Source: Malacoraja senta
Lineage: Eukaryota
Direction: 5' to 3'
Length of the DNA: 64,000 nt
Assembly (NCBI GenBank): GCA_038087875.1
Contig: CM075988.1
Span: forward strand, 13,206,001-13,270,000
In this document: in pieces, positions 5,491 through 63,214 of the stretch
How the letters are laid out: each line of letters starts with the position of its first letter
Numbering within the stretch: position 1 is the stretch's first letter
Notes under the pieces: generated by a model
Told to the model about the DNA's origin: nothing
The model's input: only the letters and a program-made list of their open reading frames with translations
The model's database searches: none
Program-made: the position numbers and the translations under genes

Positions 5491-5539
5491 ATGCAACTCC
5501 TCCTGAAGCTGCTTTTCCTCCTGCATGCAGGAACACAAG
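5491..5539 (+). CDS. IgSF exon 1, signal peptide MQLLLKLLFLLHAGTQ(G)
   Basis: ATG plus hydrophobic leader; phase-1 GC donor (CAAG|GCAAGT) in frame with exon 2. Confidence 0.8.
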
Positions 5540-8500
5540 GCAAGTTATGTTGATCGGACAATCTGTGGACCAAAGAGCCGTGATGGGGATCATCATTATG
5601 TGGCATGTTGCATCGATAGGTAGTTCAGGAGCGAGTCCGTTATTAAAACAGCAAGTCGATGAATATCTCTGCTCAAAGGCCGAGAAACCCTTCAAAAGAT
5701 TTAGTCTCCATTTAATCTATATTTTTAATGTTGGAATACAAGTTTTGCGTCTTCATTGCCTGCGATTGCCTGCAATGATTCAATTAGTTAAAACATTTGA
5801 GATATAATTCGGTCACTACAACTCCATCAGAGAGCACAAAGCAAGAATCTTACGAAGGTGTAGAAACGAGGAACAGCAGATTCTGGTTTGCAAGAGAAGA
5901 CGCAGAGGGCTGGAGCAACTCAGCGGGTCAGGCAGCATCCTTGGAGAACAGGAATAGGTGGCCTTTCGGGTCGGGACCCTTTTGCAGACTTTGAAAAGTC
6001 ATCTCATCCATGTGCTCCAGAGATGCTTCCTGACCCGCCGAGTTACTCCAGCCCTTTGTGTCTTTTCTAGCGTCCAAAGATCACGGTGCCACCAGCCACC
6101 GAATCTGCTGAGAGAAGGCATTTGCAACCATCATGGAAGCGAGAATCGTTTGAAAACGTCAGATTTGAATACGTTTCTTTTAAATATTGTTTCCGTTAGA
6201 AAACCCCTTGTTCGGTGTGTAAAGTGGATGTTTATTGAAGTACTAACGGGAGTATAATTGACAAATGTGTTTATTTTCCACCAGGAGTTCCGCTAATCAC
6301 AAATTTGACCCAGCCACGTCTGGTCAACGCGTGGAGAGGCGAGTCCGTCACGTTAAATTGTACATTTACTTATAATGGAAGTGTGAATGCCTGGCTCCGC
6401 GTTTCATGGCTTCGGACATCACCTGGAGAGTCTAAAGATACTTACAACACGAACAACTCGCTCTGCATTCCTCACCCCCTCTGGGGTGGTTTCAAAATCT
6501 GTACGGTATCACTGAAGATTGAAAATGTATCGGTTGGTCACTCTGATTACAACTACATTTGTGCGGTGAATGTACCAAGTGTCTTCCCTCCAATTCATGA
6601 AATGGGCCAAGGAACACGAATACAGGTTTATGGTAAAGTATTTGAAATACTATGATGATCTCCAGTCTCTGCACTTCATGTTTATGAAATCGATAATGTT
6701 AAACGCAGTGACATTTGAACCAAGCCATTTACAGATACTTTAACAGACATAATACCAAGCTGACCCAATTAGAAATAAGATGAAATGAACACATTTTGCT
6801 TCAACCTAAATGAATAAGGCATACTTAAGACGACACAAAGGGCTGGAGCAATTCAATGCGTCAGGCAGCATCCCTGGAGAACATGGATAGGTGACATATC
6901 GGGTCTAGATCTTCTTCAGACCATGTTCCCCTGAGATGCTGACTGACCCGCTAAGTTACTCCAGCACTCTGTGTTCTTTTGTAAACCAGAATCTGCAGTT
7001 CCGTGTTTCACAGAGGTATTTCAAGGTTGGTGTTTCCAGCTTTTTTTGTAAAACACGGCTTGTGATGTCTCATTTGATCTTAAATCGTATATGAATACCA
7101 ACAGTGACAATATTGCTCCATTTCTCTTTCATTTCACTTTCTATTCTGTCCATACCAAAGGATGAACTGGTTTTACAACAGTTTAAAAAAAAACTCTTTG
7201 AGATAGTTTGATTGACTGCATTCAGTTAGGATTCAGTTTGTGATAGATCTCACTCTAGCAATGGAGGAAGGGATGACAGGTCAGTATGGGAATGGAAAAG
7301 CGAATTGAAATGGATAGCAATTGGCAGCTCCTTCCCAGAGGGAGCAATGGTGGGTAGATGGGGATAGTGCATGGAAGGGAACATTTTAAGGGGAGTTCAC
7401 TTATTGTACTAAGAATTAATGGAAACAGAACTTAGCCAAGTCAAGCTGTTTATTACTTGACTTGCCTATTTCCTTCGCTCCATAGATGCTGCTGCACCCG
7501 CTGAGTTTCTCCAGCACTTTTGTCTACCTTCAAGCTGTTTATTGTCATTGGCACAAGAACGGTGAGGTACAGGTGTAACAAAAATCTGCACACAGAAACA
7601 TAAATTATAAGTAAATTGTTTATAAATCACATAAAATTCTACAAGACTAAAAAATGGAAGAAGACTGTAAAACACAATAAGAAAAACAAACAAGTCCATG
7701 GTGTTCCATTGTCGTGGGAGGATTGGGGTCGTGTGGGTTGGTTCAAAAAAGTTGTAGGAAAGTAGTGGTTTCTGAACCTGGTGGTGTGATACTGTAGGCT
7801 TTTATACCTCGCCCTATGGGAACAGTGAGAAGAGGGCATGGCCTGGATGGAGAGATAATAGATGCCACCATCTTGAGGCATGTAGGTAGGGAGGCCTGTG
7901 GCTGTGATTGCCTGAGCCTCTTGAGTTCCCGGGTATTGAAATTTCCATACCAGCCCAAGATGCAATCAGTCAGAATACTTCCTACAGTACATCAGTAGAA
8001 GTTTATTTGCATGTTGCATAACCTGCCAAATCTCTTTAAACTTCTAACAAAGTAGAGGCAGTGGCAGATCTTTTTCATGATTAGAGATTAGAGATTCCTT
8101 TATTTGTCATTCAGACCTTTCGGTCTGAACGAAATTTCGTTGCCTGCAGTCATACATATAATAATAAATACCAAAACACACAATAAACACAAATTAACAT
8201 CCACCACAGTGAGTTCACCAGGCACCTCCTCACTGTGATGGAGGCAAAAGTCTTAAAGTCTCTGTCTCTTCCCGCTTTGTTCTTCCTCTGCGCTGAGGCG
8301 ATCCAGGCTTCTGATGTTGTGACCCCGCCGGGTGATGGTAAGTCAGTCCCGCGGCTGAATCCGTGCTCCGCGACGGGCCGGTTCAAACTCCGCGGCCCGG
8401 GGTGGTCGAAGCTGCCGAAGCTGCTGCCCTCCAGTCCTGCGGACGCAGCTGTAGTTGCGGGAGCTCCAGAAAAACAGGTCATCCACCTGCGACCTGCGAG

Positions 8501-11500
8501 CTCCCAACGATGACGTCCACCGGGCCCGCGGCCGAGCCTCGGATTCAGGTCGCCACCAGCGTCCTCGGTCGCCACCGCCGGAACGCCACCGCAGCCCCGA
8601 AGCCGGCCAGCCCCGCGCTGGTAAGTCCTGGCACTGCCTCCGGAGCCTCGAGGTCAGTCGGTCGCAGTTGGAGTTGGAGGCCGGCAGCTCCGCCATTAGG
8701 CCTCGGCGCAGACGGAGGCAGAGAAGGGGGATACGACAAGAAAAAGTCGCATTCCCCCGAAGGTAGAGACAAAAATCATGTTTCATTACAGCTATGTGCT
8801 CTGCTTAAGAGAGGTCTTCTGAGATGTTATCATCCAGGAATTTGAAGTTGCTAACTCATTCCACCATTGACCCAATCTTAAAAACTACATGTTGTCGCCC
8901 GACTTCACCGTTCCAAAGTCAATGGTTCGCTACTTTGTTTTGTTGACCTTGAGTGAGAGTTTGTTGTTGCGGCACCACTCAACCAGTTGTTCCATCTCTC
9001 TCTTGCACACTAACTGATCACCACCCATAATTCAGCTAACCACAATGGTGTAATTGTTGAGTTTATAGATGGCATTGGAGCTATGCTTAGCCACATAGCT
9101 ATGGGTGAGAAAAGAGCAGAGCAGGGTGCTGAGGGGTTGGTCTCCTTGGTTTGCAATAATTAAGTCTGAGGAGCAATTAAATTGCAGTGCATTAAATTAT
9201 GTGAGGTCTCAACACACAAACCAGAAAGGACTTGGATCTTGTTGCCTGGAGTAACATGGAAGCATAGATGTACAGTATGTTAGCTGGTAGAAGAATTGGG
9301 TTGATGTTGTGAACAAACAAATTAACTCAATCAGTGGCAGTGACCGGAACTCATCACCTGAATGGGTAAAAGAAGTAGAAATCTTCACCAAATTTCATGT
9401 ACCTGAATGAGCACTTGAAGTGCATCACCTGCAGGGCTTTGAACTAGAGAAGTGAGAGTAAATTAAAAGTATGTTTTAGAGCAGCATGTATTCAATAGAT
9501 CTCCTACACCAGGGGTTCCCAACCTTTTTCGTCCCGTTTACCCCTGGCAACTTTAATAGGACATAACAATGTTATTTCACTTATTTATGAACAACTAATG
9601 ATGAACAGATGCCAGAACCAAACACAATCAGTCAATGAGAAAAAAAATGTACAAATCCAGAATCAACAAATTTACCCCCTGGGGGTAAATTTATCCCTGG
9701 TTGGGAATTCTTGTCCTACACCATAAATTTCTAGATGATTATCATTAACTCAAGCTTCCACTAATCTCTCACTGAAATGTTTTACTGTGCATTACGAGTA
9801 TTGTCAATACTAACCAAAAGATTACCGCATGTGAGTCTGTGTGATATACATAATCTCATTTAGCCAGGACCATGGAGTAATATTATAATGGTCCAGCATA
9901 TATTTGATCCTTGATGCTTCTCAGCTAAAGAAGGGCTCTATTATTATGATTCTACATCATTAACTTAACATATTCTCTATGAAAATAGAGCAGAATTTTG
10001 GACAATTTACTCTGTCAGTAAGTTTCACTAACATTGAAATGTGTGATATATAGTTTAATACTTTATGCTTTATCTTCTCTCAGATCATCCAGAAATGTAT
10101 ATACGGAGTGATACTTTGGTTGCTGGTCATGAATCCACTCTAATCTGCTCTGGCAGGGGATTGTACGGCAAGGATATCTCCTTTACATGGACATGCATTT
10201 CTACAAATATCACTGCACCAACTTTTGAAACAGTCAGGAATGGCACACTAGTTGCCACCAGTCATTACAAGATTGTCCAAGAGTGGAAGACAATGGGACT
10301 GTTTGCAGTTGTCAGATAAATCATTCCACTTTTGGACGACCAGCTGTAAATACAATCAAACTAAATATTATGTGTAAGTATCATCTTTGACTTTTGAAGT
10401 GGTATTCACTGTATTGCTAATCTTTGAATTCTTATTGTATGCACATTATTGTGTTATAACTGATATGTACTGTATATCACCATCTATACCAGTGTAACAG
10501 AATATCTTCTGCATCTACTTTACCTGCTCATTGATCCAGTTCCATTAGTTTTATCACTTACATGTTCTCTCGTTTATATTGTTCTCGGTTTCTTCTATTT
10601 TGCCTTTCTCTCTTGTCCTGTTACTCAGACCCAAAGTTTTAATTCACCTTTCTCAATTGCTTTAAATCAATCTGCCCCAAATACTCTATCTTCTTACTAT
10701 GATGATTATTTCCCAGATTTGAATCATTTTCAGTTAAGTTTGAAGCTTCCTTATAGATATCTCTTGGTAATCCTATGTGGTGTGTCACCCCATCTCCACT
10801 GAGGCAATCTCAAAGGCTAATCCTGCAAACCTTCCTTCTCAATCAGAGTTTGTGACACTTACAGGGTGGATCAATATTCATCAACCCTCTCCCTTCCACA
10901 TTCATATTCTGTCCTGTTCATTTTACAATTGGACTTTTGCCATCTAAGCCCTCATTGTGCGTGTGTGCATTGATAAAAGTATTTCAAGTATAACTAATTG
11001 CTCCTTCTCCAAACTTCTTGGCCAAGGACTCACAGAGGTTCTATGTTCCCTTTCACCAAAACTCACTTTCTTCTGTCCTTATCCATCTCCTGCAACACTT
11101 CACCCTTTTGCATCTCTGCTTGTTTTGTACTTCATATCTCTCCATTAAATTTATCTTTCTCTACCAACAAAAGTTGATTCTTCTCTCCCAGCTTTTGCAA
11201 TGAGTGGTATCTTCTTCTTGCTATTTTCAATGCGTGTCTTATGTACCTGTCTTAACCTTAGGTCTTTGATTTCATAGCCCTCTGTCCTGCATTAACTTTG
11301 TTTTCAATATCAACTCCTCTATTCATGGCCACACCAACAATATTCCCTTCTCATGTGTAGGAAGAAACTGCAGATGCTGGTTTAAAAAAAAGATAGACAC
11401 AAAATGCTGGAGTAACTCAGCGGGAGAAGGGTCTCGACCCAAAGCGTCACCCATGCCCTCTCCAGAGATGCTGCCTGTCCTGCTGAGTTACTCTCGTATT

Positions 11501-14500
11501 TTGTGTCTACCTTCCCTTCACAGGTGGCCCTGCTACTCTCACCATATGCAGGGGTATCTGTGATCATTTGTGGTAACCAAATAAATCACTTACAACCCCA
11601 CACCCACCAGTGTTCCGACAGGTGAAGAAAATCACCTAAGAATTATATTAGTGGCTTCACTCTTCAAACTGTTAGGCATTTGGAACTCCATTTGCCACGT
11701 TTACCAAACACCTCATCTCTCTACTACCAGCTGTATAACCCTCGAACAATTCTACATTTCTCCAGTCGTAATATCGAAGAATCTCAACTTTCATCGTGCA
11801 AATGGTTCATTAAGCTCTAGCATTCACTCTAGCATTCACTTTCCTCTCCACATCAATCCCTCACTCTCCATAGACAAGAGCAAGCTTAGCTTTTTGTTAC
11901 ATATTCGATTCTTTCCAACTTGGCTTCAGGCTGGCAGTTCCGAATTATACTGAGGTCCCTTGAGAATGATTAGTTTTCAGAAGTGCAAAGTTTGATTGTA
12001 AATAGCTGTTCTGTGTATACTTGCATGTTAATTCTTTTCACATTGCTTTAATCTACAATGAAGTGTACATTATCTTTACCGTTAGATGGACCACAAGATC
12101 TATTAATAACATACAGGTTGAAAGCAGTGGATACTTTTCGACCGATCAATGATAGCATCATCTTTGTTGCTGCTGATTCATTCCTGGAACTGAATTGTCG
12201 TGTAGATAGTAATCCGGTATCCACTGTTATCTGGACCAAGGCCATGGAGAATCATAATGTAACGTTGCAAACTGGAGTCAGGTGCAACAGTTCAAAAGAA
12301 TGGACACGTTTCCAGCATAAAGATGAAGGAATGTATTGGTGCATGGCAAAAAACGGCTACGGCCGGAGAAACAGAAGTATCTCGATAAACGCAAAACGGA
12401 AAGGTAAATAGAATTGTAATTATACATGTGCATAGCTAACAATGTTTATTGAGGTAGAATCATTCTTAGCAAATAAGACCTCAGCTTAATTAGTTCAATG
12501 TCTTCTTTCTTAATCATAGTGATTGACCAATTGTAATATTTTATTTCTTTTACAAATCATATATAGTAAAGACTGTTTAGGGCTGTCATTTTTAAACGCT
12601 TTGATTTTATAGTGTTTTTCCATTGTAGATAAAGAAAATTTTAACATTAGAGTGCTGCAGTTTTGTTTATTAATGGCAGTATCTCTTCTGGAATTGAAAG
12701 AAATATATGTACTCTGCTGTCAAATAAAGTAAAACGATTGCAGTTTTTTTTTAATGTATGTCTCAGAGCTGAAACATGACATTTAGTTGACATCTTGAAT
12801 TTTCTTTCACAGATTATCGTTATCTTTATGCTCTGCTCCCTCTAATTACTGCCATCATTTTGGCAATAATATATTTTTGCCTGATCTGCAAGAGGCAACG
12901 GAAAGGTAAAACTTAACATAAATCGTTGGATGTAGGTGTTAACCTTAAATCAACAACAATAGCCAGCTGAAAAAGAATGTGGTTTTCAATCAAGCGTGTT
13001 ATTACAATCCTTTTTGATATCCTGTGTGTTGATTGTGGGTTATTTTCATGGCCAATCCTCTGTTTGGTTAAATAAGTGTTACATTTCAAGTTAGAGGATC
13101 ATGAAAGATCTTGTTCAATATTTTCCAGCAATGCCCTGATCTCAAAAATGAATTTAGTTTAGTTTACAGATACGGCGTGGAAACAGGCTCTTCAGCCCAT
13201 CGAGACAGCTCCGGGCAATGATCACCCTTACACTAGTTCTGTTATCCCACTTTCGCATCCTACACACTGGGGGAAAATTACAGAGGCCAATTAACCTACG
13301 TCTTTGGAATGTGGGAAGGAACCAGAGCACCAGGAGAAAACCCATGCGGTCATAGGGAGAATGTACGAACTCCATACAGATAGCACCCGTAGTCAGGATT
13401 AAACCCGGGTCTCTGGTGCAGCAAGTCAGTAATTCTATGACTGTGCCACTGTGCCGCCCTAATTGAAAATAATATTATTTATTAATTCATAGAAAAACAC
13501 CAAACTTGGCAAGCCATTTTCAAAATTGGAATCAGGAACTACATTACAAAATATGCTAAAATTTTTAATATGATTAGTATGTTGGAGTAGTGCAGAAATT
13601 TTGAGTGAGCACATTTTGGAAATAAAAATTAAGACTTTTTATGGGAAATATTTAAATTAAGATAAAGAGATGCACTACAATGTGGAAAAACAAGTAGTTC
13701 AACTATGTTCTGTTTTGCATTCAAGAAACATTGGGGGGTTTTTCTACAATTCTTTGAGTCTCTACGAGTCTTTCAAATTTATTGATCATTATAATAGAAA
13801 AGGAAATGATCTTGAACTTGTTTGACCTACTGAAGTTAGGGAGGAATTTTGTAGAGGAAATTCATTTCTGGAAAAAGTGCAGCATGAATTCTTCACAAAG
13901 CCACCAGGACGTGGAATTATTCATTAAGAGACTTGAAAGGAAAAGCCCTTTTATTTAATTAACTCTGCAATGGTTAAAAGGATGAAAGGGCAAGTTGAAT
14001 TATGAGAGAGTAACATCACATTTCACAAGGGGAGCAGCAAGAAAGTTTTAAAATGAAATTCGTTGAGAGTAAATTTAGAAACAAAGTCTAATTCTCTGTT
14101 TGCTATTAACAGTTTATGATGACTGAAAATAATTTAGTTGTTTGGAAAAAAGAGACCTTTAAATACCGCAGGTAGACAAAAATGCTGGAGAAACTCAGCA
14201 GGTGAGGCAGCATCTATGGAGAGAGGGAATAGGCAATGTTTCGGGTTGAGACCCTTCTTCAGACTGATAATACAGCAGAGTGAGACTGGATAATGTGGAG
14301 TCAATTTGATTTAATTGGATTGATTGGATTTGATTGGACTTTTTCATGTCGTATATGATTCTCGATATTAGGCTGCGTGACAGCTTATCTGCCCCTCAGC
14401 TTATTAAATCAATATGTGAAATTGAAGCTTGAATGCCATCAATGACATTTGGAATATTTTTCCTGCTGTGAATCTTATCACTGGCCTTTCTTTATTGTCA

Positions 14501-17500
14501 CTGCTTTGCCATTTCTTTTCACTTGCTTCACTCAAGGCTAAAGTACACCATCCCCCATGCATTTCCTGTTCAAGAGTGCATTGGAATCACCCCAAAAAAA
14601 ATCCTCAAGACAGCGGAATGCCTTGCCTTCCACTGCAGTACATTTCCAGTGCAATGTACAGGCCTTTGTTAACCAAAGCGTGATGTGTTCTGACCACTAC
14701 TTCTCCGTATTTCTCATCACCCAGATCTTTTCAACATGAATGTGCAGTATTATTTCACCACAACTATAGACCTGAAAATTTAAACATGCAGATATCTGAA
14801 AAAATGAAATGCTGCTTTACAAAACGAGGCCAAGGTTAGAGGAAATTGGGTCCGAAATACGTCCACCTTGATGTGGGAAGGAATCTATCGATGCTAATCC
14901 ATTCTGAGCACTGTGCAAGAGAGAATATTTAGCATATGTATTTTGGGAATTTTGTTCATAGGTCCAAGTTTGACTTGGGCCTGTATAGAGTGGATGTGGA
15001 GAGGATGTTTCCACTAGTGGGACAATCTAGGACCAGAGGTTATAGCCTCAGAATTAAAGGATGGTCCTTTAGGAAGGAGATGAGGAGGAATTTCATTAGT
15101 CAGAGCGTGGTGAATCTGTGGAATTTATTCCCACAGAGGGTTGTGGATATCAGTGGATATTTGTAAGGCAGAGATAGATAGATTCTTGATTAGTACGGGT
15201 GTCAGGAGTTATTGGAAGAAGGCAGGAGAATGGGGTTAGGAAGCAGAGATGAATCAGCCAGGATTGAAAGGCAGAATGGCCTAATTCTGCTCCTTTCACT
15301 TGTGAACTTTTGAACATGCACTGCTAATCCAGTTGCAGTATATTCTTTTAAAATTTACAATATCTTGCACACTCCTACCAAAAGTGAATATAAACTGAGT
15401 TTAATAAATGCCTTCAGAGAAGACAAAATATCACCTGCCTTTGTATTGTCCTTACTCTAAATCAAAGCAGGTTTACTTTCCAATCTTTGACAGGATGGTC
15501 CAGATTTTGGCTTTTCACGTTTCTCCCTGAAAATTGTATGGTTTTCTTGACTCTGGGTTTCATCTTTCTGCTCTGCATTCCTCATTGGATGAGTTTCCTA
15601 ACTCAACACTAAGATTTAGTAAAAAACCTGTATTCTCTGGCAATGACCTTATCTGTTCCACCCTTTATGGCTTGTTGTATTGTTTATTTGGAGGGCAAAT
15701 TGACTAACAGCCAGCGAATGGCCACAACAGGTTTTAAATCAGCAAATCAGACACTATTTACATGCAAAAGTAGAAAATTGCACTGAAGTGGCAAAAAAAT
15801 GGGAGCTAATGTATCAGCTACATATTGATTTGGGGAAGATCTCATGCTATACTACCCATTTTGCACAGAAAAATCAAGACGCATTTCTACACCAATAATG
15901 ATGATACTCAGTGAAAAATCAATTATTAAAAAATAGCTGAGTATCAAAATCCTACATGCATTCTAGGTCCCAAATTCTAAATCAAAGAAAATTAATATTA
16001 AAAAATGAATAAAACAATTTACAAATATTTGTTATTCATTTGAATTTTAAAACATCTTAAGTTATGATTAAAGTAATCCTCCTAATTCAGATTTTGGCTT
16101 TTACTCCCTCACTGTTAGTCACTGAAGCAAATAAATTGGATTTTAATCACAGAAATATAGCATTGGTCCATTGATACATAATGTCTTCCATCTTAAAGAG
16201 ATTAAATGGTGTAATAGGGCAGGATTTGAAAAGTCCCAGAGTTCTACGCTCTAAGTTGTTCTTGTCAAAGAACAGAGGAAATAAAAAGTGGATGGTACAA
16301 TAGCAGCCTTCATACATGAAATCACATTTCAGCTTGCTTGTGCAGTGAACTGATACAAGAAGCCAAAGTAAAAAGGAAATTTGCAAAGATTGGAAGGGAC
16401 AGTGGCTTTACTCTTGCAGTTCTTATGCTTGGCCTGGTTTTGGAGCTACAGTTGTACAATGTGGTTAACTGCAGCATTTGTAAGTGAGAGCAGTGTGTGG
16501 TATGCAGCTGGATGTGCCTTTTGTATAGCTGTGGTGACCACAGTAAAAAATAGTAGTTCACTACAAATTGTCTATTTTTAAGTTTTAATCATTTTATCTC
16601 AACTAGAGATAAAATATAACATTTTGGGTTTGGAGTGAGATATACGATCAGAGAAATCCTTTGCATAGTGTGCAAGTTATTTTTTAAACAAATTCATTTG
16701 GGTTAATATTTTTTACTTAAAAATTAAATGTTGCTTGGCCATTTTTTTTAAATCAACATTTCAATTTGCTACCTATTATCACAGATATGTATCGTGTAAC
16801 AAAAGCTTTGTGACAAAAAATAGTTGATAAGCTTGATAATTCTAATAAGAATTATTAACATTATTCAAAGAACGTCTAAAATAAATTAGGATGGATTCAA
16901 AGTAAACAGGATATAACATTTTCCAAATTTTGAGAATAATCTTTTTGAGAGGTTCTTGTCACGGCCCATCACAAGTTACCACAGATACGATTTACTGTAT
17001 GAAGGCTACGGAACAGTGCTCTTCTTATTTTTATTCTTTGAAAATAAGATGAATTTACCATGTGCAATGCCACAATTTATCAATTACTTTATTCACTGAA
17101 ATTGTGAATTTATACCTGTAACCTTTGCAGCCAATAATTAATTATTATTTTATGAATTATTTCACAGAGGTCAATGTTGAATTCAACAGCCCAGTGGAGT
17201 AAATAAATAAAAGTTATTGATCTTTTTCCGATGGTCAGATCCTCACTTCTCACCCCAAACTGACAGGAATAAGATCACTTTAGCAATACAGATTTTGGGT
17301 TCTTTGCATTGTTTTTCTTGTAGAAATGTGGGTAGTAAATGTTTACAAACATTGTAGCTTCACTGTAACATCTTTCAAAGTTGGCCAAGACCACGTTTTG
17401 TTGCAGCTTGTGAGAGTCTGTCCGTCTTCTCCTGCATTTCTGAAGACATAAAACCCTGTCCCACGGTACAAGTTCATTCCACGAGTTCTCCCAAGTTTGC

Positions 17501-20500
17501 CATGATTCGAACTTGGAGATTTACGGTAATGGCCACTCGTCGGTACTCGGGGCTCTCGTGGACATTTTTCATCATGTTGAAAAATCTTCGCAAGTCTTTC
17601 CGTGCTTACCTGCTGTTAGTGAGTCTTCCCGAGTACCTGCCGTTAGCGCTAAGAGACGTCCCCGAGCTCCGACGTACCCGCTACGTTCATTCTCCGTGCT
17701 TACCACGAGTTTGATTTTTTTAAAACTCGGGAGAGCTCTTGGAATGAACTCGCACCGTGGGACAGGGCTAATACTCCCGGTATATTAAGCATTTAAAAAG
17801 CCTCTATGATATTCTCAGCGTATTTTATAACATTTTACAATGGTCGGTTTTTTTTCCTGAATTGTTGCCACTGGTGTTCAGCATGGAAACATGATGATAA
17901 TTAGCTTTCAAGATATATTCAATTGTACAATGGATGACTGCATAATCTGATTTGCTACTGATGATTGAATGAGGAAACAAAACCTTTTGCTGTTAGTTAG
18001 TTTGTACCACATGGTTTTGTGATTTCATCTCAGCAGGAAGTCTATATGTAATGTTTCCTCTGCTTATGGCAACAAGGCAGCATGCACAGAGTTACACTGA
18101 AGTATCGAGCAGCACTTGGGTCTGCAGAAGGACCACACATCCAGTGTTATAAGGATGAAACTGTTATCAATCAGGCCAATTATGATTTTACAAATAATTA
18201 ACAAGGAAGTACACATGCTATTGCTGAAGATAATACTCAAATAAGGCTTGGTCTGCCCATTCCACAGGCTCAGACAGTATTAAAGATTTGGTAATCCTAT
18301 TTTAAAGTGTTATAGAGTCATGCAGCATGGAAACAGACCCTTCGGCCCAACTTGCCCATGCCAACCAAGATGCCCCATCTTCACAAGCCCCACCTGCCCA
18401 TGTTTGGCTCTCTAAACCTTTCCTATCCATGTACATATTTGCTGCGTTTTCTGTGTGTTCACTATCATTGACAACATAAGTGTTATTGGATGAATGTCTT
18501 GGTTTGCCTTAAGCATTCCTGTGAGTTACTCCGGCACTTTGTGTCCTTTTGTGTAAACCAACATCTGCAATCCCTTGTTTTTACACTGAGAATTCTGCTG
18601 GAGTGGACTTGGAAGGACACAAGATACAGTAGAAAGGCAGATGTGGGAAGCAGAGGGCAGCTGAGTGACTGTCAATACAAACAGATAGTTAACAAAGTTG
18701 CTTGGGTGGAATACTTGTTCTAGTTCGCGATAGGTACTGAAGATGGTAGAAACATTACTCACTCTCTGAGCAATCACCTCTGCTTGTTGGGCTAATTGCT
18801 TGCTGATATTGTGAAGTGCCTTTCAACATTTTGTACTACAATGAATAATCGTACGATTTCCTGGAAGTGCACAAAAATAGTAATAACTTGTCAAAAGGCC
18901 TTCTGGTGGACTAAAGAACATATAATTATGCATTATCATGTTCTGTGTGAAATTATACTTACTTTACTTAATCTCTTTTAATTAAGAACATAAAATTATT
19001 GTAGCTGTTTGCTGCATAATCTATACAACATGTTTATGACACTCCCAAGTTTGGGTGCAATAGTTTTGTCAGAGAATTGGCCACAGTATTATGGTTCTTA
19101 ACATGTTAATTAAATGAAAACTCCTGAATTCTCTGAGCCCTATGTTATTCTAGTTATAACCAAAGCATGAAAGACAGCCGGACAAGTCTCTAGGGAAAAG
19201 TACTTTCAAATTAATTTATTTTTGATTAAATCTTATCTATTGTCTTCATAATTTTATATTACCTTCATGGGTGCAGGCGACCATCATATCCTTGTTTCAG
19301 TTCCCTCTTAAACCAGCGAAGACTCAGCTATACTGAGTTGTAGGAGTCATTTTATGACAATTCAGCTGTGCAAGTGTTTCTCCGTGTTTGCTGAACCCAT
19401 GTGATGCTCCACATCTACATATTCAGTCAAACAGGGAGGCCGCATGGATTTGAGTCAGTTAAGTCAGTGACCCCAGCGATGAGTCAAGAGACCTGAAACT
19501 AATTTTCTTGGTCCGGGCATCATGAACAGATACTTTATGATACATGAAAGCCATTATCAAGCACAATCATCCAGCAGGATAGCAGTGAAGACTATGTTTA
19601 GAAGCATGGTTATATTATTGTGGTCTAAAGCAGCCTTTAGTAGGAATTGTAACAAATTGATGCTCTATTGACAAAATGCATTCTGGTGATAAACAGAACT
19701 TTAAAAAAAACGATGGAAAAGATGGACTGTAAAGCTAAAATATAATTACTATGGTAATTAAAGTACATTTGAACGTAACATTTTAATAATTTAAAATGTA
19801 GGTGTGGTTGAATATTTTTTTCAGTTTGTTGGCTTAATTTTAGTTTTAGTGATTGTTACCAATATTCAGCCTTGCTGCATGAGCACCTGTGTTGGAGATT
19901 ATTATACCTTAAAACTGGCAAATAGCTTTCGATGCATACTAAGATAACGCCTTTGTTTTGGATCTGAATAACCTAGAACAGAGAACTTTCTACAGTGAAA
20001 AGCTCCAAGAAAGTTGGGACTACGTGTTCATTCATAATGTTATAATCAGGTTATAGGAGTAATCCAAAAACTTATTGGTTACAGATTTTTAGATCTGGAG
20101 GACATTGAAGTAAAAGTTTAGTTTATTGTTTATTGTCACGTGTACCGAGGCACAGTGAAAAGCTCATGTTGCCTGCTAAACAGTCAGCAGAAAGACAATA
20201 CGTGATTACAATCGAACCATCCACAGTGTTATCCAAAAGTTATACCTCAGTTATATAATTGGACTGATGACTGAACTGCAGGAGTACAATGGGCAGTTTT
20301 GCGGAACACTCCTAAATTGCCCTCTGCGACGTACAAGATCGTTATTGATTCTTTATGCCCACCAAAGTCCATTTGCAGAATATACGGACAAATACTCTCG
20401 GTGCACAAGAAGACCAAGGTGCAAACTTTTTATTCAAGGGTTTCGCAAGGAATTTCTCTCTGGAATTCACTACGGATATCATTACAGCCCAGAGCACAGT

Positions 20501-23500
20501 TAATCACATGGCACAATCTTTGGTAGTCTAAAGTAACATATATTGTTCATTGTCAATAATATACACACTTCATCCTGAGATGTGAATCTGTGTAACTTTA
20601 TCGGAATGGAATCTGGATTTCCAAATTTTAACGAGAAGCGAGTGAGCAAACTAGTACTGAATTAATTAAAACTGTGGAAGATGCAGGTTGACATTGCCTT
20701 TCGTGTTGAACATCTCCAGAGTAGGATGCAAGCCCACAGCCTTCTGACAACGTGTTACCAAACCAGGGTGATGCTTTCTACCGAGGGAGCAAAAAGCCAA
20801 TGCTAATGATACCTCAGGAGTGACTGATCTAATAATCACAACTGACAAGCTATGTGCTGAAATTAACATTCGATTGTCAAATACATGTTTTCTTTCCCTT
20901 TCCCCAGATCCAGTCACTGTAACCATTGAGCTGAGGTAAGAACTTTGACTTAATTTTAACATTATGTGAAAACATTTGATTAATATATTTATAATATTGT
21001 ACAAATTGTTTAATGATTTCACATTCCACCAGATCACTCGTACTAATTTATATCATTCCCAGAACCCCAAATTCTACTGAAATGTACTAAATGAGTTGAT
21101 GCTAACAGTGTCAGAAAATTACTGCAAACCTTCATGATTTAACATATCTCAGAAGTAAAAGCTGACGTGTAACAACAGAAATCAGTGTAGGGGTCTGTGA
21201 AAAGCTTCATTTGTCCATGTTTATTCTACACGTCCAATTCTTATAAGTTTGTTATCCACAGAAAATGTAATTGAAAACCCCCAAAGGGAACAATGTCCCT
21301 GGCCTATCCAAAATGTGTGACAATGAGATGGGTGTTTCCCAGTGGGTGATAGAATTAATGCTTTCAATTGGAATTAGAGGAAGAACTAAAGACAATGTAA
21401 AGGCATTAATTGCACTGACAAAACGCTGGTAGCTCAGAATATTTCACTTTCACCTTCACCAGTCTCCATATGCAACTCTGCATACATTGCTGAGGTGTCC
21501 AGCAGTTTTCTTCCAAACATCTAACTATACTTTAATCCCTGAGAATATTCCCCATCTGAGAGTCCAAGCATTCGGTGTCTTTCAGGCTTAGTGTAATTTT
21601 CCATTCTCTCAACCCCTGTTACACCAGAGCCCAAGATGAACGATGATTAGAAATGTCACAACTGCTAACACTGTTAGCTGCACTAACTGGTGATGATTCT
21701 AAACTGTGCCTGGTCAAGGTTTTTGTTGGACGATCAGTAATTCCCCTAGAACATTCAGTCAGCTCACCAGCAACTTGTAGTTTTTTATTAATTACTAATT
21801 TTAACAACACTAATTTGTTCAAATGATGGGATTTAATACCTTCAAGAGAGGAAAATCCTTATGTCCCATTCCCATTAATAAATGTTATTCTTCAATGGCT
21901 TTACGTTAAACACCATTTACTCATTTAAAAATGGGTGACATAACCATGGTAAGTGCTCTGGATGTCATTGAATACTTATGTAAAAAGATGATGAGTTTCT
22001 CTGTATTGAAAGGAAGTCTGGACAAAGGTGACAATGTGCATTATGACATTGGCTGGTAACATCGTTCAAGCCATAAAGCAATACATGGTTGTGGTAATTG
22101 TGCAAGTTATTAAAATGCATAAGACTGGCACATTTTTACCATTCTTGTATACAATGTCATTAGACAATGGAAGAATGAAATAAGGCTAATAGTATTCTCT
22201 TTTAAAATTCTTCCTACCTTGTATTTATTTTGTCTTTTTTATTTCTATCTGTTCAAGTCCTGAAAACATGCACAGGGATGCAAACTGCAACAAGGAGTTA
22301 GGTATGTATATTATATACAACTGTGTTTAGTTTAGTTTAGAGATACATTGTGGAAACAGGCCCTTAGGCCCACTGAGCCTGCACAGAACAACAATCACCT
22401 GTACACAAGTTCTATCCTACACCTGAAGGACAATTTACAGAAGCCAATTAACCTACAAACCTGCACGTCTTTGGAATGTGTGAGGAAACCGGAGCACTTG
22501 GAGATAACCCAAGTGGTCACAGGATGAATGTCCAAACTCCTTACAGACAGCACCCGTGGTCGGGATCAAACCCATGTGTCTGGTGTTGTATCAGACAGAG
22601 TACACTAACTATTCAATGTCAATTGTGAAAAGTTCAACTGTACATGTGAGACCAAAAGAGCATTGAACTAAAATGTAATCAGTGGGTTCACTCTTCTTCA
22701 GCAGTTCTAAAGGATACAACTTTATTTGGACCAGTATCTGAGAGTCCAAGCATTTGGCGTCTTTCAGGCTTTGTGTCATTTTCCATTATCTCAACGCCTA
22801 TGCCCAGCCTTCCTGCTGATGTCCTCAAAACCATCCCACCTCAATCCTGATCATCAGCCCAGAGCTTCGACTCCTGCACCCATCCTAGCTTCACTACCTA
22901 TCTAAAACAATAGCCTGGCAGATAATATGAAACAGGACATAAATCAAAGCTAAACTTGACATTGGTAGGTAACATAATACAAGCATTAAACTGATGGACG
23001 ATTGTGGTTATTATGCAAGTTACTAGGCAAAACAGTAGGGAATGGAGGGATATGGATTACGTGCAGGTAGAGAAGAGATGGTTTGCCATCATGTTCGGCA
23101 CAGGTATCATAGGCTACAAGGCCTCTTCTTGTGCTGTCCTGTGTTTTATGTGGTAAGTGTAGCATGCTTGAGACAATGTGGGTGACTTTTTGACANNNNN
23201 NNNNNNNNNNNNNNNNNNNNNNNNNNNNNNNNNNNNNNNNNNNNNNNNNNNNNNNNNNNNNNNNNNNNNNNNNNNNNNNNNNNNNNNNNNNNNNNNNNNN
23301 NNNNNNNNNNNNNNNNNNNNNNNNNNNNNNNNNNNNNNNNNNNNNNNNNNNNNNNNNNNNNNNNNNNNNNNNNNNNNNNNNNNNNNNNNNNNNNNATGAC
23401 TGGGCTTGTATTCACTGGATTTAGGATGAGAGGGGATCTTATAGAAACATATAAAATTATTAAGGGATTGGACACGCTAGATGCAGGAAACATGTTCCCG

Positions 23501-26500
23501 ATGTTGGGAGATTCCAGAACCAGGGGCTACAGTTTAAGAATAAGGGGTGGGCCATTTAGAACTGAGATGAGGAAAAACATTTTCAACCAGAGAGTTGTGA
23601 ATTTGTGGAATTCTCTGCCTCAGGAGGCAGTGGAGGCCGACTCACTGGATGCATTCAAAAGAGAGTTAGATAGAGCTTTTAGGGCTAGCGGAATCAAGGG
23701 ATATGGGGGAGAAGGCAGGAATGGGGTACTGAATGTGGATGATCAGCCGCGATCACATTGAATGGCAGTGCTGGCTCGAAGGGCCAAATGGCCTACTCTT
23801 GCACCTATTTTCTATGTAACTATGTATGTCTCTTAAATGTTGTTCTTGTATTTCCTCAACTACCTTCTCTGGCAGCTTGTTCCATTTACTCACCAGCCTC
23901 CGTGTGAAAGCATTGCCCCTCAGATTCCTATTCAATCTTTCCCCTCTCGCCTTAAATCTATGTCCTCTGGTTCTTGATTCCTCTACTTTTTGGGTAAAAA
24001 GAAACTCTGTGCATCTACCCTGTCAATTCCATCTTGATTTATCTTGAATTTGCATCTCTGAGCAAAGTGAGTGCAGTGAAAGTCCTCTCTGGGAAGCTCA
24101 AATAATCACAAGGATAAAAAGCTGCTGCTGCTCTGTGCTTCCTGCAAAGGCAGAGTGGGATGAATGACACAGTGAAGCCTGCGACCAGATTAAATCATTA
24201 AAATCCCCCCAAAAGTTTGCTCATCCCTTCTTTGCAACATATTTTCAAGAGGGATCCTATTTGCACATTCAGTATCATCAGCAATAGAATATTCACATCT
24301 GCAAAACATGTACGTCTATCTTGCACGTTTTGAGGCTACAAAGCCGCTCGGCCTTGTATTTTTCACAGAACAGTATATTAAATTAGTTGCCAGAATCTCT
24401 TTACTGAGAACACTACAGCATGCTTTATAGTGAAGTAGTTACTTTCATTTCTAAGCATGCATTACAAGGCACCAAATATGCAACCACCTGCTTTTTTCAA
24501 ATGCCAGCCATAAACCAATGTAAACAGCACCGTTGAGACTTTATTCAGAGAATCAGTAAGATAAGCCTTTAGACACGATAACAAACGTTAAGGCACAACG
24601 GTTATTACTACATCCCCAGTAGTGGTGTCAGAGCTACATTCAATTCTGAATATCATTTGTGGTTAAAAAAGCATGCGATACTGCAATTTTACGTCAAGGG
24701 AAGGATATGACAATAAAGCTCCGTGTTTGATGCTCTGTTCTCAACGGGCTGTGGATCAACTTACTACAGCTATGGTCAAGAGGAAAAAATTAAATACTCA
24801 GAACTTATGATCCTAACTACTAATAATTTATAGAATGATATAGCACAGAAAGGCCTTTTGCCTGCAAAGGCCAATCAGACCATTGTACTTGCCTATACTT
24901 AGCCCCATTTGCTAGCATTCAATCCATATTTTTTTTCGGAATAAAAACAAAAGAAGTTAACGAAAGTAAGGTGGAATCAGGAACAAAGACACAAAACATG
25001 TCAAAAATTGTACATGTGAAAGTATTACCACAACAAAAATTTGAGCCAAACCACGCTCTGCTTTTTTTGGGAGTTTGGTAGAAAACTTCCAAAGGACAAC
25101 CTCCTTATAGTTCAGCTGATCTCGGAGGCAAATCAGAGGTCAGATACCAAAAACATTTAAACCTCCTTTCCACAATGGACTAATCAACTGGTGGTGAAAT
25201 GCTTGACTGTTGTTATTGAAACATCCACATTCATATTAATGAGGTCACCACCACTGAATATAAATGAAATTGTTAGTATGTGGTTTACTTATTTTTCTTC
25301 ATTTACCATGTCTAAAACTTCAAGGTGCTTTTAATTAATTTTATCTTCTACTTTAAATAATTGTTATATTTTTAAAAATGTTTTAAAACCTTTTCAAGCT
25401 GCTTTTCATGTTCTCAGAGGCATTGAAATGAGAATCAGCTTGAAATGTCCTCTAGAGGTTAGTGTGGACAGGTGAGGACCTTTGGCAGTACGTTCAGGCA
25501 CTGGGTCAAAACTAGAACAGCATCGGCCAATATCCAAGCATGGCTGAGTGATCAACTTGTACTCTGTGAACTTGTGCCAGGGAATATTAATGGTGGGCAT
25601 ATCGTTTCAGTTGGTAGCACTCAAAACAGATTATAGAAGGTCAGGCACCTCACGTTTTATGCAAGTTTGATTTATGTGTTTTTGAAATAACGCACGTGTT
25701 TAATTAATAACTATATCAAATTTATGCGCTGTATTTTTTAAATATTGTGCCCAAAGTTACATCTCTTTAAATATATTTATTTAATTTATGCATCTTTGAA
25801 TTACATGCTCCGTTTCAGGAGCGTAACCCCTGCGTAAAGCACTGAAACAGCCTTACCGATCTTTGCTGGTATTTATTCCTCATACTTAGCTCCTCCCATC
25901 TTTATCTAAACTATCCAGATGCTAGAAGAGTTATTATTACTTCTGATATTCATGCGTTCTGATTTGTTTGGCAGATACAATATATGCAGTGGTCAGGAAG
26001 AATGGTCCACCAATTAGCAGACCGTATTCAACAGGTAAGATAAAATTCAGGGACTTAAACTTCTTCCATATATTACAATAAATGCTTCACATGTTCGTTC
26101 TTTTCCCCACAGAGGTTGCCTTTGTTAATGAAGGGAACAGTGAAGAAGAAGTCTCCTATGCGGACATTGTTATCCATAGTCCAAAACAACGCTACAACCA
26201 AAAAGCCAAGGTATTGGTAATTGCATCAGAGAAAGTATCCTTGTTTATTCATCCTTGATGTATCTTAAATACATCAGCAATTGCAGGACACTCATAGCTA
26301 CTGTATATCTCCGGAGAGGAATTATATCCAACAAAGTACACATTTCCCTGTGGCCGCATAGGTTTTCTCTGTTTCAGTTTTCTCACACATTCCAAAGACG
26401 TGTAGGTTAAATGGCTTCTGCAAAATTGTCCCTCGTGTGTTTGATAGAACTAATGTATGATGCATCATAGGTCAGCAGAGACTCGATGTGCCGAAGGACC

Positions 26501-27903: not shown

Positions 27904-27934
<31 letters not shown>

Positions 27935-29773
27935 ACTCACCTCACAACTATGTCAGATGCACTGCACAGGATCCAATAACATTATATCTTTAGGATGCGG
28001 GAAGAAACCAGAGCAGATGTAGGAATCCTCATGGTCACATGGAGTATTAACAGATTCCACCAGTCACAGACCACAGTTCAGATTTGAACCAGATCATTGG
28101 AGCTGTGAGACAGCTGCAATGACTACACTGCCACTATGCCATCCTAACATAAAGGTTTAATACACAGAACATTTCCCATCATTTATCTTTGATGCTCCAA
28201 ATTTAGTTTTGCGCTGAAGTGGAAACGGATGTCAGTGCCTTCAGTCAAGTATCAACATTTTGATAATATTTTTCCATTTGTACATAGAACAGTACTGCAC
28301 AGGGACAGGCGCGTCAGCCCACAAAGTACTTGCCAAGCACGATGTTAAGTTTATCAAATCTCCCTTGCCTGCACATCATCCATATCTCTCAATTCCTTGC
28401 AAAACCATGTGCCTATGTAACTGCCACTATTGTATCTGTTAAATGCCCCTAACATATTGAATGCTAGTCTCATATCTAATAGAGAAACTGTATATAGTTC
28501 TCCACATAATGATCTCAAATCATCGTAACATTCCTAACAGTTCAAATGTAACTGTTTTGAATAAAAATCTGTTTATTTTTAACTGAAAATAAATTAGATA
28601 GTCTCCATGCCATTTACTGGATATGTCCTGGTAGAATTTGACATTCCAAAATACATTAATACCCGTCTGTATTAAATCCATCTTCCACTCCTCTGCCCAA
28701 TTTTCCAACTAATCAATGTTGTTCTGTTTTCTTTCACAACCCTCTTCACTATCTATTATTCCATTAATTTTTGTGTCATCAACAAGTTTACTAATCAGTC
28801 CACCTACTTTCTCATCCAAAGATAGCCACAAAATGCTGGGGTAACTTGGTGGGTCAAACAACATCTTTCGGGATCACACTGTCCCAAGCCAAGCATTGGT
28901 CTATCTGGAACCATCCTGCCTGAGGTCATCTGTTGCTGGCCCTGATTTGTCTTAGTCCTTTCTTGCTTCCTGCACTCCCCACCCCCACCACCCCCATACA
29001 ATCAGTCTGAAGAAGGGTCCCGACCTGAAACATCACTTGTCCATTTTCTCCAGAGATGCTGACTGACCTGCTGAGTTCCTCCAGCATTTTGTGTATATCT
29101 TTGTTATAAACCAGCATCTGCAGTTCCTTTTTATTACTTTCTCATCCGTCATTTACAATGCCATTCACCACTGAAAAATGGAAAAATGCCCCTCAACTAT
29201 TCTCATCTTTTAAACTAGAAAATATCGTAAAATAATAAGACTTTTTCAAAATATTATAAGATGACCCTTCTATTACTCTGATAGCCTTTGCTAACATCCA
29301 CGCAGGCATTATTTATAGACATTTGCAGGTAATGTGTGAATCATCAGAAATATCACAGATAATATGGAAAGTTCTGTGCTCATGTGCCAACCACTGTGTT
29401 TTTCACAAATCTAAATATAATATAATATAAGTTGTACATAAATATAAAATTGCTGACTTGATTTAAACCAGTACTAGTTGGCTCAAATGAGTGGATAATT
29501 CAATTTCCATTCCACTAGGTACATTTTCCTCTATCCACAGTTATGCCTGACCTAAACATTTCCAGTAATCTTGCTATTATTCCACTTGCCCTTGGCACGT
29601 GAAAGTGATTCTTCTTCTTTTTTGTGTTCATTCAGCAAATTTGCGACGTAATGGAGAAAAATGCCAAAAAACAGTTACCGTATCTTTACAGTTCATCTCC
29701 TCGCCATCATGTTGATGATACATCTGAATATTCTGTGGTGCGAGTTTCACGCCAAGACTTGAGGACTGTGTGA
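5491..29773 (+). CDS. 10-exon IgSF type I receptor (V-C1-like-C2/I-TM-ITSM/ITIM), ~488 aa once a 1-nt exon-3 frameshift is corrected
   Basis: Exons 5491-5539, 6285-6632, 10084-10373, 12086-12403, 12813-12905, 20908-20935, 22258-22301, 25975-26034, 26113-26210, 29636-29773. Intron phases 1,1,1,1,1,2,1,1,0 all match. Ig Cys/Trp motifs, a hydrophobic TM and Tyr motifs are present. Confidence 0.88.
5865..6070. mobile_element. Fold-back Penelope-end element in IgSF intron 1
   Basis: ctggagcaactcagcgggtcaggcagcatc and its reverse complement. Confidence 0.7.
6285..6632 (+). CDS. IgSF exon 2, V-set domain with J-like GQGTRIQV
   Basis: ttttccaccag acceptor; TLNC...VSW...YIC...GQGT; G|gtaaag donor; 348 nt, phase 1-1. 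Confidence 0.93.
6830..7010. mobile_element. Fold-back Penelope-end element in IgSF intron 2
   Basis: Same inverted arms as other copies. Confidence 0.65.
7535..9140 (-). mobile_element. Rex1/Babar-type fragment interrupted by a younger insertion
   Basis: Reverse similarity to 1-870 on both sides of 8080-8780. Confidence 0.65.
8080..8780 (-). mobile_element. CpG-rich retroposon with (AATCTCT)n tail, TTTCAT TSD
   Basis: GC-rich body; tail repeat at 8080-8096; TTTCAT at 8073-8078 and 8781-8786; related sequence at ~57680-58025. Confidence 0.55.
9510..9713. mobile_element. hAT-type MITE
   Basis: TIR CAGGGGTTCCCAACC / GGTTGGGAATTCTTG; 8-bp TSD TCCTACAC on both sides. Confidence 0.85.
10084..10373 (+). 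CDS. IgSF exon 3, C1-like domain (290 nt, 1-nt frameshift near 10277)
   Basis: DHPEMYIRSDTLVAGHESTLICSGRGLYGKDISFTW in frame 1, then RVEDNGTVCSCQINHSTFGRPAVNTIKLNIM in the shifted frame; cag acceptor and gtaagt donor. Confidence 0.88.
11355..11515. mobile_element. Fold-back Penelope-end element
   Basis: gacacaaaatgctggagtaactcagc ... gctgagttactc..tattttgtgtc. Confidence 0.7.
12086..12403 (+). CDS. IgSF exon 4, C2/I-set domain
   Basis: YGP...LELNCRVDSNP...VIW...DEGMYWCMAKNGYG; tag acceptor and gtaaat donor; 318 nt. Confidence 0.92.
12813..12905 (+). CDS. IgSF exon 5, transmembrane segment and basic stop-transfer
   Basis: DYRYLYALLPLITAIILAIIYFCLICKRQRK; tttcacag acceptor and gtaaaa donor; 93 nt; no charged residue in the TM. 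Confidence 0.9.
13153..13460 (-). mobile_element. tRNA-derived V-SINE (HE1-like)
   Basis: tRNA-like head, V-domain core, CR1-like tail with (ctaaa)n. Confidence 0.8.
14900..15315 (+). mobile_element. CR1 LINE 3' fragment
   Basis: MFPLVGQSRTRGYSLRIKG...VVNLWN. Confidence 0.8.
17452..17769. mobile_element. PIF/Harbinger-like MITE
   Basis: TIR CCCTGTCCCACGGT / ACCGTGGGACAGGG; extended internal palindromy. Confidence 0.7.
20908..20935 (+). CDS. IgSF exon 6, 28-nt cytoplasmic micro-exon (DPVTVTIELS)
   Basis: Strong pyrimidine tract tttctttccctttccccag and gtaaga donor; phase 1->2 bridges exons 5 and 7. Confidence 0.75.
22258..22301 (+). CDS. IgSF exon 7, 44-nt cytoplasmic exon (PENMHRDANCNKEL)
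   Basis: Pyrimidine tract plus aag acceptor, gtatgt donor; phase 2->1. Confidence 0.75.
22327..22595 (-). mobile_element. V-SINE (HE1-like)
   Basis: Same core and tail as 13153-13460. Confidence 0.75.
23196..23395. other. Assembly gap (200 N)
   Basis: Run of N within IgSF intron 7. Confidence 1.
23396..23820 (+). mobile_element. CR1 LINE 3' end
   Basis: RMRGDLIETYKIIKGLD...VVNLWNSLPQ...ELDRA plus tail. Confidence 0.85.
25975..26034 (+). CDS. IgSF exon 8 with ITSM TIYAVV
   Basis: DTIYAVVRKNGPPISRPYST; ggcag acceptor and gtaaga donor; 60 nt. Confidence 0.88.
26113..26210 (+). CDS. IgSF exon 9 with ITIM VSYADI
   Basis: EVAFVNEGNSEEEVSYADIVIHSPKQRYNQKAK; ccccacag acceptor and gtattg donor. 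Confidence 0.88.
28820..29140 (+). mobile_element. Penelope-like terminal repeat fragment with hammerhead motif at 29007-29034
   Basis: CTGAAGAAGGGTCCCGACCTGAAACATC. Confidence 0.65.
29636..29773 (+). CDS. IgSF exon 10, terminal, with distal motif SEYSVV
   Basis: QICDVMEKNAKKQLPYLYSSSPRHHVDDTSEYSVVRVSRQDLRTV*; phase-0 ttcag acceptor. Confidence 0.85.
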   Translation, partial: QICDVMEKNAKKQLPYLYSSSPRHHVDDTSEYSVVRVSRQDLRTV

Positions 29774-30994: not shown

Positions 30995-31180
30995 TGTGTA
31001 GGAAGGATATACAGATGCTGGTTTAAAACGAAGATAGACACAAAATGCTGGAGTAACTCAGCGGGACAGGCAGCAATCTCTATCTGAAGAAGGGTCTCGA
31101 CCCGAAACGTCACCTATTCCTTCTCTCCAGAGGTGCTGCCTGTCCCGCTGATTTACTCCAGCATTTTGTGTCTACCTTTG
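30995..31180. mobile_element. Fold-back Penelope-end element with the best-preserved hammerhead motif
   Basis: Inverted arms around CTGAAGAAGGGTCTCGACCCGAAACGTC. Confidence 0.75.
31084..31111 (+). ncRNA. Minimal hammerhead ribozyme motif (putative)
   Basis: CUGAAGA, extra A, stem II GGGUC-UC-GACCC, GAAA, C-GUC cleavage triplet. Confidence 0.6.
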
Positions 31181-32560: not shown

Positions 32561-32644
32561 AGATGGACAATTTTCTCACAACACACACTTCCATCCAGAT
32601 GTCTGGCTCCATTACATCTGACAGCTTCATCCAAAGAAAAGATA

Positions 32645-44815: not shown

Positions 44816-63214
<18,399 letters not shown>

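Follow-up and report, generated by a model that had tools for sequence, protein, structure and literature searches.

Among living vertebrates, sharks and rays are the oldest that possess antibodies and T-cell receptors (TCRs). Nectins, PVR and CADM proteins are recognised by the motifs (V/I)(S/T)Q in strand C, AX6G and T(F/Y)P together with a PDZ- or 4.1-binding tail, and CD28 and CTLA-4 by an FG loop with MYPPPY followed by GNGT. In Siglecs the V-set domain is followed by C2-set domains and is built without the canonical disulfide between strands B and F; it has an intrasheet B-E disulfide and a further cysteine linked to domain 2, and its typical arginine stands right after the F-strand cysteine. 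This arginine ligates sialic acid and is the feature that defines Siglecs (PMC8161119). SIRP proteins consist of one V-set and two C1-set domains; in the SIRP-alpha/beta pair, ITIMs (immunoreceptor tyrosine-based inhibitory motifs) act through SHP-1 and SHP-2, and a basic residue in the transmembrane (TM) helix pairs with DAP12 (PMC12975943). Genes with a germline-joined VJ unit beside C1-set domains are watched as relics of the origin of antigen receptors; the elasmobranch-only UrIg and UrIg2 have a germline VJ exon followed by a C1-set domain, and UrIg2 possesses three C domains and assembles into antibody-like dimers whose C2-C3 part is Fc-like (PMC12227049). Here we describe a gene of the skate Malacoraja senta that lies at positions 5491-29773 (+) of a stretch of 64,000 nt (assembly GCA_038087875.1, contig CM075988.1, positions 13,206,001 to 13,270,000 of the forward strand; this whole stretch is called the window). 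It encodes an immunoglobulin (Ig) superfamily receptor with a V, C1-like, C2 ectodomain and is probably the inhibitory member of an elasmobranch-specific receptor pair, in which a long form with ITIMs is accompanied by short forms.

The gene is real; it comprises 10 exons (Table 1) and codes for a type I membrane protein. The model was rebuilt from the window sequence together with alignments of orthologues, and its spliced product has 488 amino acids (aa) when one base missing from exon 3 is bridged. All splice sites are of the GT-AG type with the sole exception of intron 1, whose donor is GC; the same donor (CAAG/GCAAGT) is present in both copies of the gene in Leucoraja erinacea. The cytoplasmic tail of 127 aa carries one motif of the ITSM (immunoreceptor tyrosine-based switch motif) type, TIYAVV, and two of the ITIM type, VSYADI and SEYSVV. 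A model with 8 exons, without the small exons 6 and 7, was superseded by means of the orthologue alignments, which also displaced the acceptors 29675 and 29692 of the last exon in favor of 29636.

Splicing at the predicted borders was seen in two runs of a sister species (X3 and X4), which is about as distant from the window as L. erinacea. A contig of 2109 nt from X4 and one of 880 nt from X3 joined 6285-6631 to 10083-10373 and to the exon starting at 12086, exactly as predicted, and in both runs the depth over unique intron bins was zero. A contig of X4 (record 24) extends 80 nt 5' of exon 2, which leaves room for exon 1 (49 nt) and about 31 nt of 5' untranslated region. The check for spliced transcripts that a preliminary description of this DNA, made from the sequence alone, had proposed thus gave a positive result for the exon 2-3-4 junctions, in the sister species and not in M. 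senta.

The V-set domain (Pfam V-set, E 7.6e-10) had its best matches in the PDB among the V domains of Ig lambda and TCR-alpha, and its GQGT aligned with the J motif FGxGT. The V domain and the J-like strand form one unbroken exon of 348 nt, which is spliced as such in the transcripts of the sister species; the domain is not joined by RAG from separate V and J segments as in the rearranging Ig and TCR receptors. Its Cys, Trp and Cys correspond in the alignment to the canonical core of Ig lambda V domains and are invariant across 15 orthologues. Two further invariant cysteines (C60 and C75 of the 15-orthologue alignment) could form an extra disulfide. The VJ-type V domain and a proline-rich FG loop, (Y/F)PP followed by GxGT, are also reminiscent of CD28 and CTLA-4. 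However, those proteins have a single Ig domain and not three, instead of MYPPPY the loop has VFPP in the window and, in most orthologues, xYPP, it stands two residues further from the cysteine, and nothing else supported a kinship.

Domain 2 (D2) was assigned to the Pfam C1-set in all 15 family members (best E 6e-15), and 13 of the 15 also matched C2-set_2. Profile searches of the PDB with this domain returned Ig CH, Ig CL and UrIg2 domains (UrIg2 among the top three), and its fold matched the alpha-2 domain of class II major histocompatibility complex proteins, beta-2-microglobulin, D2 of CADM and SIRP-alpha, and tapasin. Equally good structural matches in a D2-only VIA search were D2 of CD22 and of MAG, with Z scores of 11.6 and 10.8. 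The third domain (D3) matched Pfam Ig_3 (5.5e-9) and I-set (7.8e-7) without a C1-set match, and contactin, Robo and D3 of MAG in the PDB. The AlphaFold2 (AF2) models reached a pLDDT of 82-83 (82 for the model of the ectodomain); these models and the searches were based on the orthologue P0029 and on family alignments, not on the spliced protein of the window itself. The skate protein differs from UrIg2 by having one C1 and one I-set domain and an ITIM tail.

The preliminary description had proposed a non-rearranging V domain with the germline J-like strand GQGTRIQV, a C1-set D2, a C2/I-type D3, an uncharged TM helix and, in the tail, TIYAVV, VSYADI and SEYSVV. Our results agree with all of these assignments: the helix is uncharged according to the hydrophobicity scan and the sequence, and the tail motifs were located on the + strand and are invariant across sharks and rays. 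The proposed length of about 488 aa is also obtained from the 10 exons. The reading frame is, however, not open as assembled. A frameshift in exon 3 had been bridged without mention, and the two C1 signatures quoted, TLICSGRG... and CQINH, sit in different frames.

Full-length orthologues were found in about 19 elasmobranch species by HMMER, word-indexed searches and name look-ups. The rays are represented by Leucoraja, Rhinoraja, Mobula, Narcine and Hypanus, and the sharks by Rhincodon, Stegostoma, Hemiscyllium, Chiloscyllium, Carcharodon, Cetorhinus, two Scyliorhinus species, Mustelus, Heterodontus, Heptranchias and Pristiophorus. With the V domain as query, an exhaustive HMMER search returned six cluster representatives with E values of 1e-24 to 1e-50, after which the values fell to 1e-11. 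No relative in chimaeras, bony fish or tetrapods was retrieved by this search or by word-indexed searches with the full orthologue, the family profile and D2-D3, the reach of which is restricted by the word filter. The next-best matches were of a generic kind: a lamprey multi-V protein, papilin, KIRREL, NITR-like and pIgR-like proteins. The protein of the window is 88.6% identical to that of L. erinacea, annotated as "sialic acid-binding Ig-like lectin 13", 82.7% identical to that of Rhinoraja longicauda, and about 49-55% identical to those of sharks and other rays.

The automatic RefSeq names of the orthologues are Siglec-8, -12, -13 or -14, MAG-like, sialoadhesin-like or uncharacterised. The Siglec, MAG and sialoadhesin names fail the defining test of the V domain, as set out below. 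The gene models are already public as RefSeq predictions, under names which the sequence does not back; our search, which reached few subscription journals, found no paper on this elasmobranch family. The preliminary description had stated that the receptor cannot be assigned to a known family. This holds in part only, as full-length one-to-one matches do exist in RefSeq (88.6% identity to that of L. erinacea, about 19 species in all). It had also missed that the gene belongs to a tandem pair and that there are short and TM-arginine partners in the family.

At the locus of L. erinacea (L001, CM054038.1) the V, D2, D3 and TM exons occur twice in tandem, at 11545-16492 (copy 1) and 30301-36582 (copy 2), and the window aligns colinearly with copy 2, which lies downstream and bears the ITIMs. 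In copy 1 the TM exon reaches a stop four codons past the helix (..IIYFCLFRNR, then stop). Short forms with almost no tail are also found in sharks: P0055 of Heptranchias perlo and P0049 of Pristiophorus japonicus have an arginine within the TM helix (..IWIFVIRFIAVAAF.. and ..IWSFIIRSIAVAAY.., respectively), and in Heptranchias the short P0055 and the long P0044 are located on the same contig. Since a TM arginine with a short tail is the layout of SIRP-beta, P0055 and P0049 are likely activating partners by analogy. A tblastn comparison of every exon with the whole window revealed no paralogue inside the 64 kb, and the 10-kb flanks on each side of the orthologous loci contained no other called gene. 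As a further observation on the tandem copies, V, D2 and D3 of the RefSeq model P0039 stem from copy 1 (99-100% identical), the TM exon of that copy is skipped, and the model continues with the TM exon and the tail of copy 2; it may thus combine two genes in a chimera. In Hemiscyllium, too, the model P0041 has two V domains.

We compared nonsynonymous (N) and synonymous (S) differences between the window and copy 2 of L. erinacea. The V exon (6285-6632, compared with L001 30304-30648) showed 28 N and 4 S, corresponding to a ratio of the substitution rates (dN/dS) of 2.2, and the first part of D2 showed 8 N and 0 S. The pooled tail exons showed 2 N and 6 S, and the difference between the tail exons and V plus the first part of D2 was significant (Fisher test, p = 4e-4). 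Between the two skates, nearby intron DNA (20567-21269) was 95% identical. EEVSYADIVIH, DxxYAxV and SxYS of the tail were invariant in 12 orthologues from sharks to rays. These counts clearly point to a rapidly evolving tip and a nearly frozen tail, as is usual for receptors engaged in an arms race with ligands or pathogens.

Taken together, the family sits among the receptors of the V, C1-like, C2 type and outside any named one. Paired receptors with ITIMs are a well-known kind, and the brake mechanism by ITIM and ITSM would be an ordinary one. The V domain would bind a fast-changing ligand, either a host or a pathogen molecule. Kinases of the Src family would phosphorylate the three tyrosines of the tail, and these would recruit SHP-1 and SHP-2, possibly also adaptors of the SAP type at the ITSM TIYAVV, and so dampen the activation of the cell bearing the receptor. 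The partners with a TM arginine would signal in the opposite direction through an adaptor of the DAP12 type, like SIRP-alpha and SIRP-beta, and short or TM-arginine partners in general may serve as counterweights or decoys.

Fold searches with the whole ectodomain against Swiss-Prot and the PDB and the D2-only VIA search gave a tie between Siglecs, nectins/CADMs and SIRPs, and a profile spanning the D2 end and the joint between D2 and D3 matched nectin-2 (7.3e-7), CD33 (9.2e-7), Siglec-8 (1e-4) and PVR (1.1e-4), followed by CD22, Siglec-5 and nectin-3. The D2 end shares CxVxHxxFxxP...LxVxYxP with nectin-2 and PVR, and DHGT..CQ and LNVxYxPQ with CD33 and Siglec-8. If the RefSeq names were right, the protein would be a true sialic acid-binding Siglec of the CD33-related or MAG type. 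Siglec-12 (25%) and Siglec-7 (23%) indeed had the highest identities among the Swiss-Prot fold matches (nectins 15-19%), d1-d3 of MAG and CD22 were among the top fold matches in the PDB, and V domain first of at least three Ig domains, a membrane-proximal ITIM with a distal xEYSxV (VSYADI and SEYSVV, invariant in the family) and inhibitory/activating pairs are features of Siglecs, MAG and CD22, the tail having the layout of CD33. The D2 match to CD33, however, is equalled by nectin-2 and PVR over the same stretch, D2 scores as Pfam C1-set in all 15 members, and the V domain matches those of Ig lambda and TCR and not that of Siglecs. By alignment it would keep core cysteines of the B-F type and not the disulfides of Siglecs; the residue following the F-strand cysteine is alanine in the window and variable in the family, and no arginine of the V domain is invariant or at least 90% conserved in the 15 orthologues. 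With no conserved arginine, the canonical core and the J strand, the V domain fails the Siglec test; binding of sialic acid would not be expected, and we consider a true Siglec improbable. Siglec, MAG or sialoadhesin names have been given to at least a dozen RefSeq entries without support from the V domain, and these would mislead comparative studies of Siglec evolution.

An adhesion molecule of the nectin/PVR/CADM type that acquired ITIMs, as PVR did, would account for the order V, C1-like (C2-set_2), I/C2 and the conserved end of D2. A nectin-3-like protein was the top Swiss-Prot fold match (4.4e-16) and nectins and CADMs came next, with E values equal to those of the Siglecs. We nevertheless give this origin little credence, since by inspection the V domain is without the (V/I)(S/T)Q, AX6G and T(F/Y)P motifs (the family consensus is WVHxxWYR in strand C and VPxxYPP in the FG loop) and resembles Ig and TCR V domains with a J strand, the ITSM/ITIM tail ends in ..DLRTV and not in an afadin-binding xYV or another PDZ- or 4.1-binding end, and no nectin or CADM was retrieved by the sequence searches with the family. 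An elasmobranch counterpart of the SIRP family, a family marked by binding to CD47, is, in our view, very improbable, even though a non-rearranging VJ domain is followed by a C1-set domain, the tail has several YxxV/I/L motifs, among them the xYADI and SEYSVV types, and SIRP-gamma and SIRP-alpha were matched by fold (E 3e-12, TM-score 0.62). The pairing of an ITIM form with almost tailless forms having a basic TM residue was found for the window gene and the shark proteins P0055 and P0049, but not for the short copy of skates. SIRPs, in contrast, have two C1-set domains (PMC12975943), whereas C1-set was found here for D2 and D3 matched Ig_3/I-set only; no SIRP was retrieved by the sequence searches, and no sequence kinship was detectable beyond the fold. 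As assembled, the gene could also be a recent pseudogene of M. senta in which the deletion in exon 3 is real and the protein is truncated within D2. Exon 3 comprises 290 nt and is one base short, since its phase 1 to phase 1 requires a multiple of 3, and its frame ends in a TAA at 10317-10319. Deletion and stop are present in the assembled sequence, no RNA run of this species contains the exons, the databases hold no protein from it, and immune receptor genes frequently die. The break, however, falls in a homopolymer: the sole indel of exon 3 relative to both L. erinacea copies is one C lost from a CCC run, which the alignment places at 10276/77, and bridging the missing base gave ...SHYKIVPRVEDNGTVCSCQINH, the same as in the orthologues. 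In the X4 and X3 transcripts exon 3 is one letter longer than in the window. A short-read contig from run X1 of M. senta itself (record 4; depth 69, about twice that of neighboring haplotype contigs) has 359 letters over the 358 places of 10159-10516 and otherwise shows no differences. Considering the extra letter in the sister-species transcripts and in the X1 contig, the remaining exons, which are all open with intact splice sites, and the purifying selection on the tail, we regard it as quite probable that the one-base break is an assembly error and not the mark of a dead gene, and a pseudogene as unlikely. The frameshifted open reading frame (ORF) of 84 aa had no exact match on record in public assemblies, which is uninformative.

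Some points weigh against a functional inhibitory member of a receptor pair. The extra letter is not localised within the X1 contig beyond 10159-10516, which leaves room for a real frameshift. An RNA run of M. senta was looked for and none was found, which makes expression in this species putative. The dN/dS value comes from small counts, which gene conversion from one tandem copy to the other could skew. The short copy of skates has no charged TM residue, and the term activating partner may not apply there. The ligand, the cell type and the binding of phosphatases are predictions from motifs.

More speculatively, the family might be a surviving, elasmobranch-only lineage of non-rearranging V(J)-C1 receptors close to the common stock of Siglec, nectin/PVR and SIRP-type receptors, perhaps also of the V-C1 units of antigen receptors, which was later co-opted as a fast-evolving inhibitory/activating pair. 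We hold this to be rather unlikely; if true, it would provide a new reference point for the origin of V-C1 modules and of paired receptors.

Table 1. Exons, motifs and assembly gap of the receptor gene (positions in the window).
Feature	Position	Strand	Basis or remark
Start codon	5491	+	first position
Exon 1: start codon and signal peptide MQLLLKLLFLLHAGTQ	5491-5539	+	phase-1 end; GC donor CAAG/GCAAGT
Exon 2: V-set domain with germline-joined J strand GQGTRIQVY, four conserved Cys, FPP/YPP FG loop	6285-6632	+	Pfam V-set
GQGTRIQV	6605-6628	+	
Exon 3: C1-set domain, 290 nt in assembly	10084-10373	+	Pfam, PDB profile search, fold
TLICSGRGLYGKDISFTW	10137-10190	+	
CQINH	10310-10324	+	
Exon 4: Ig_3/I-set (C2-like) domain	12086-12403	+	Pfam; PDB
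Exon 5: stalk, uncharged TM helix LYALLPLITAIILAIIYFCLIC, stop-transfer KRQRK	12813-12905	+	hydrophobicity scan; orthologue alignment
Exon 6: 28-nt micro-exon DPVTVTIEL, phase 1 to phase 2	20908-20935	+	homology to L. erinacea micro-exon; flanks ccccag/ and /gtaaga
Exon 7: 44 nt, SPENMHRDANCNKEL, phase 2 to phase 1	22258-22301	+	orthologue alignments
Assembly gap (N run)	23196-23395		in intron 7, between exons 7 and 8
Exon 8: ITSM-type motif D-TIYAVV	25975-26034	+	D, Y, A, V invariant in 12 orthologues
TIYAVV	25977-25994	+	
Exon 9: ITIM VSYADI inside invariant block EEVSYADIVIH	26113-26210	+	12 orthologues
VSYADI	26151-26168	+	
Exon 10: remaining tail, ITIM-type SEYSVV, stop codon	29636-29773	+	acceptor 29635/29636 from orthologue alignments
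SEYSVV	29723-29740	+	
Stop codon	29771-29773	+	

The assembly gap has no bearing on the reading frame, since it is intronic and no exon of the orthologue's gene model lies in the interval matching it. Its flanks are colinear and on the same strand with L. erinacea (18248-23195 with L001 42904-47808, and 23398-24734 with L001 49244-50577). A family of repeated ORFs was observed at 14936-15166 (+), 23396-23761 (+) and 46765-47055 (+), with the motif ..TRG(Y/H)(S/R)LRI(K/R)G.(P/S)FR.EMR.NF(F/I).QRVVNLWN.(L/F)PQ... The copy at 23396-23761 directly adjoins the gap and probably explains the break of the assembly there.

A conserved ORF end, ENSAGVDLEGHKIQ followed by a stop, was noticed at 18588-18629 (+) and at L001 43244-43285, with DNA 98% identical between the window and L. 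erinacea. It matches the C-terminus of a short form of 380 aa from R. longicauda (P0001) and is a possible candidate for an alternative last exon. The sole AG acceptor for it (18589-90) gives a different frame after exon 5 in both skates.

In a comparison of the runs with 6285-12284, the X1 contigs were nearly identical to the window. X2 bears the same organism label as X1, but its contigs differed by about 3% from the window (18 differences in 574 letters, many of them indels), and X2 may come from another population or a mislabelled relative. In all four runs the read depth was thousands-fold above that of unique sequence at 6685-7084, 7285-7684, 8085-8884, 9485-9684 and 11285-11684. At these places introns 2 and 3 contain copies of high-copy repeats, and joints connect 6860-6974 with 11390-11493.

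Outside the gene, two ORFs at 61529-62256 (-) read like exons of an enzyme of the cystathionine beta-synthase/cysteine synthase type, and an ORF of 360 aa at 32905-33987 (-) is, by its appearance, a putative remnant of a retroelement protein.

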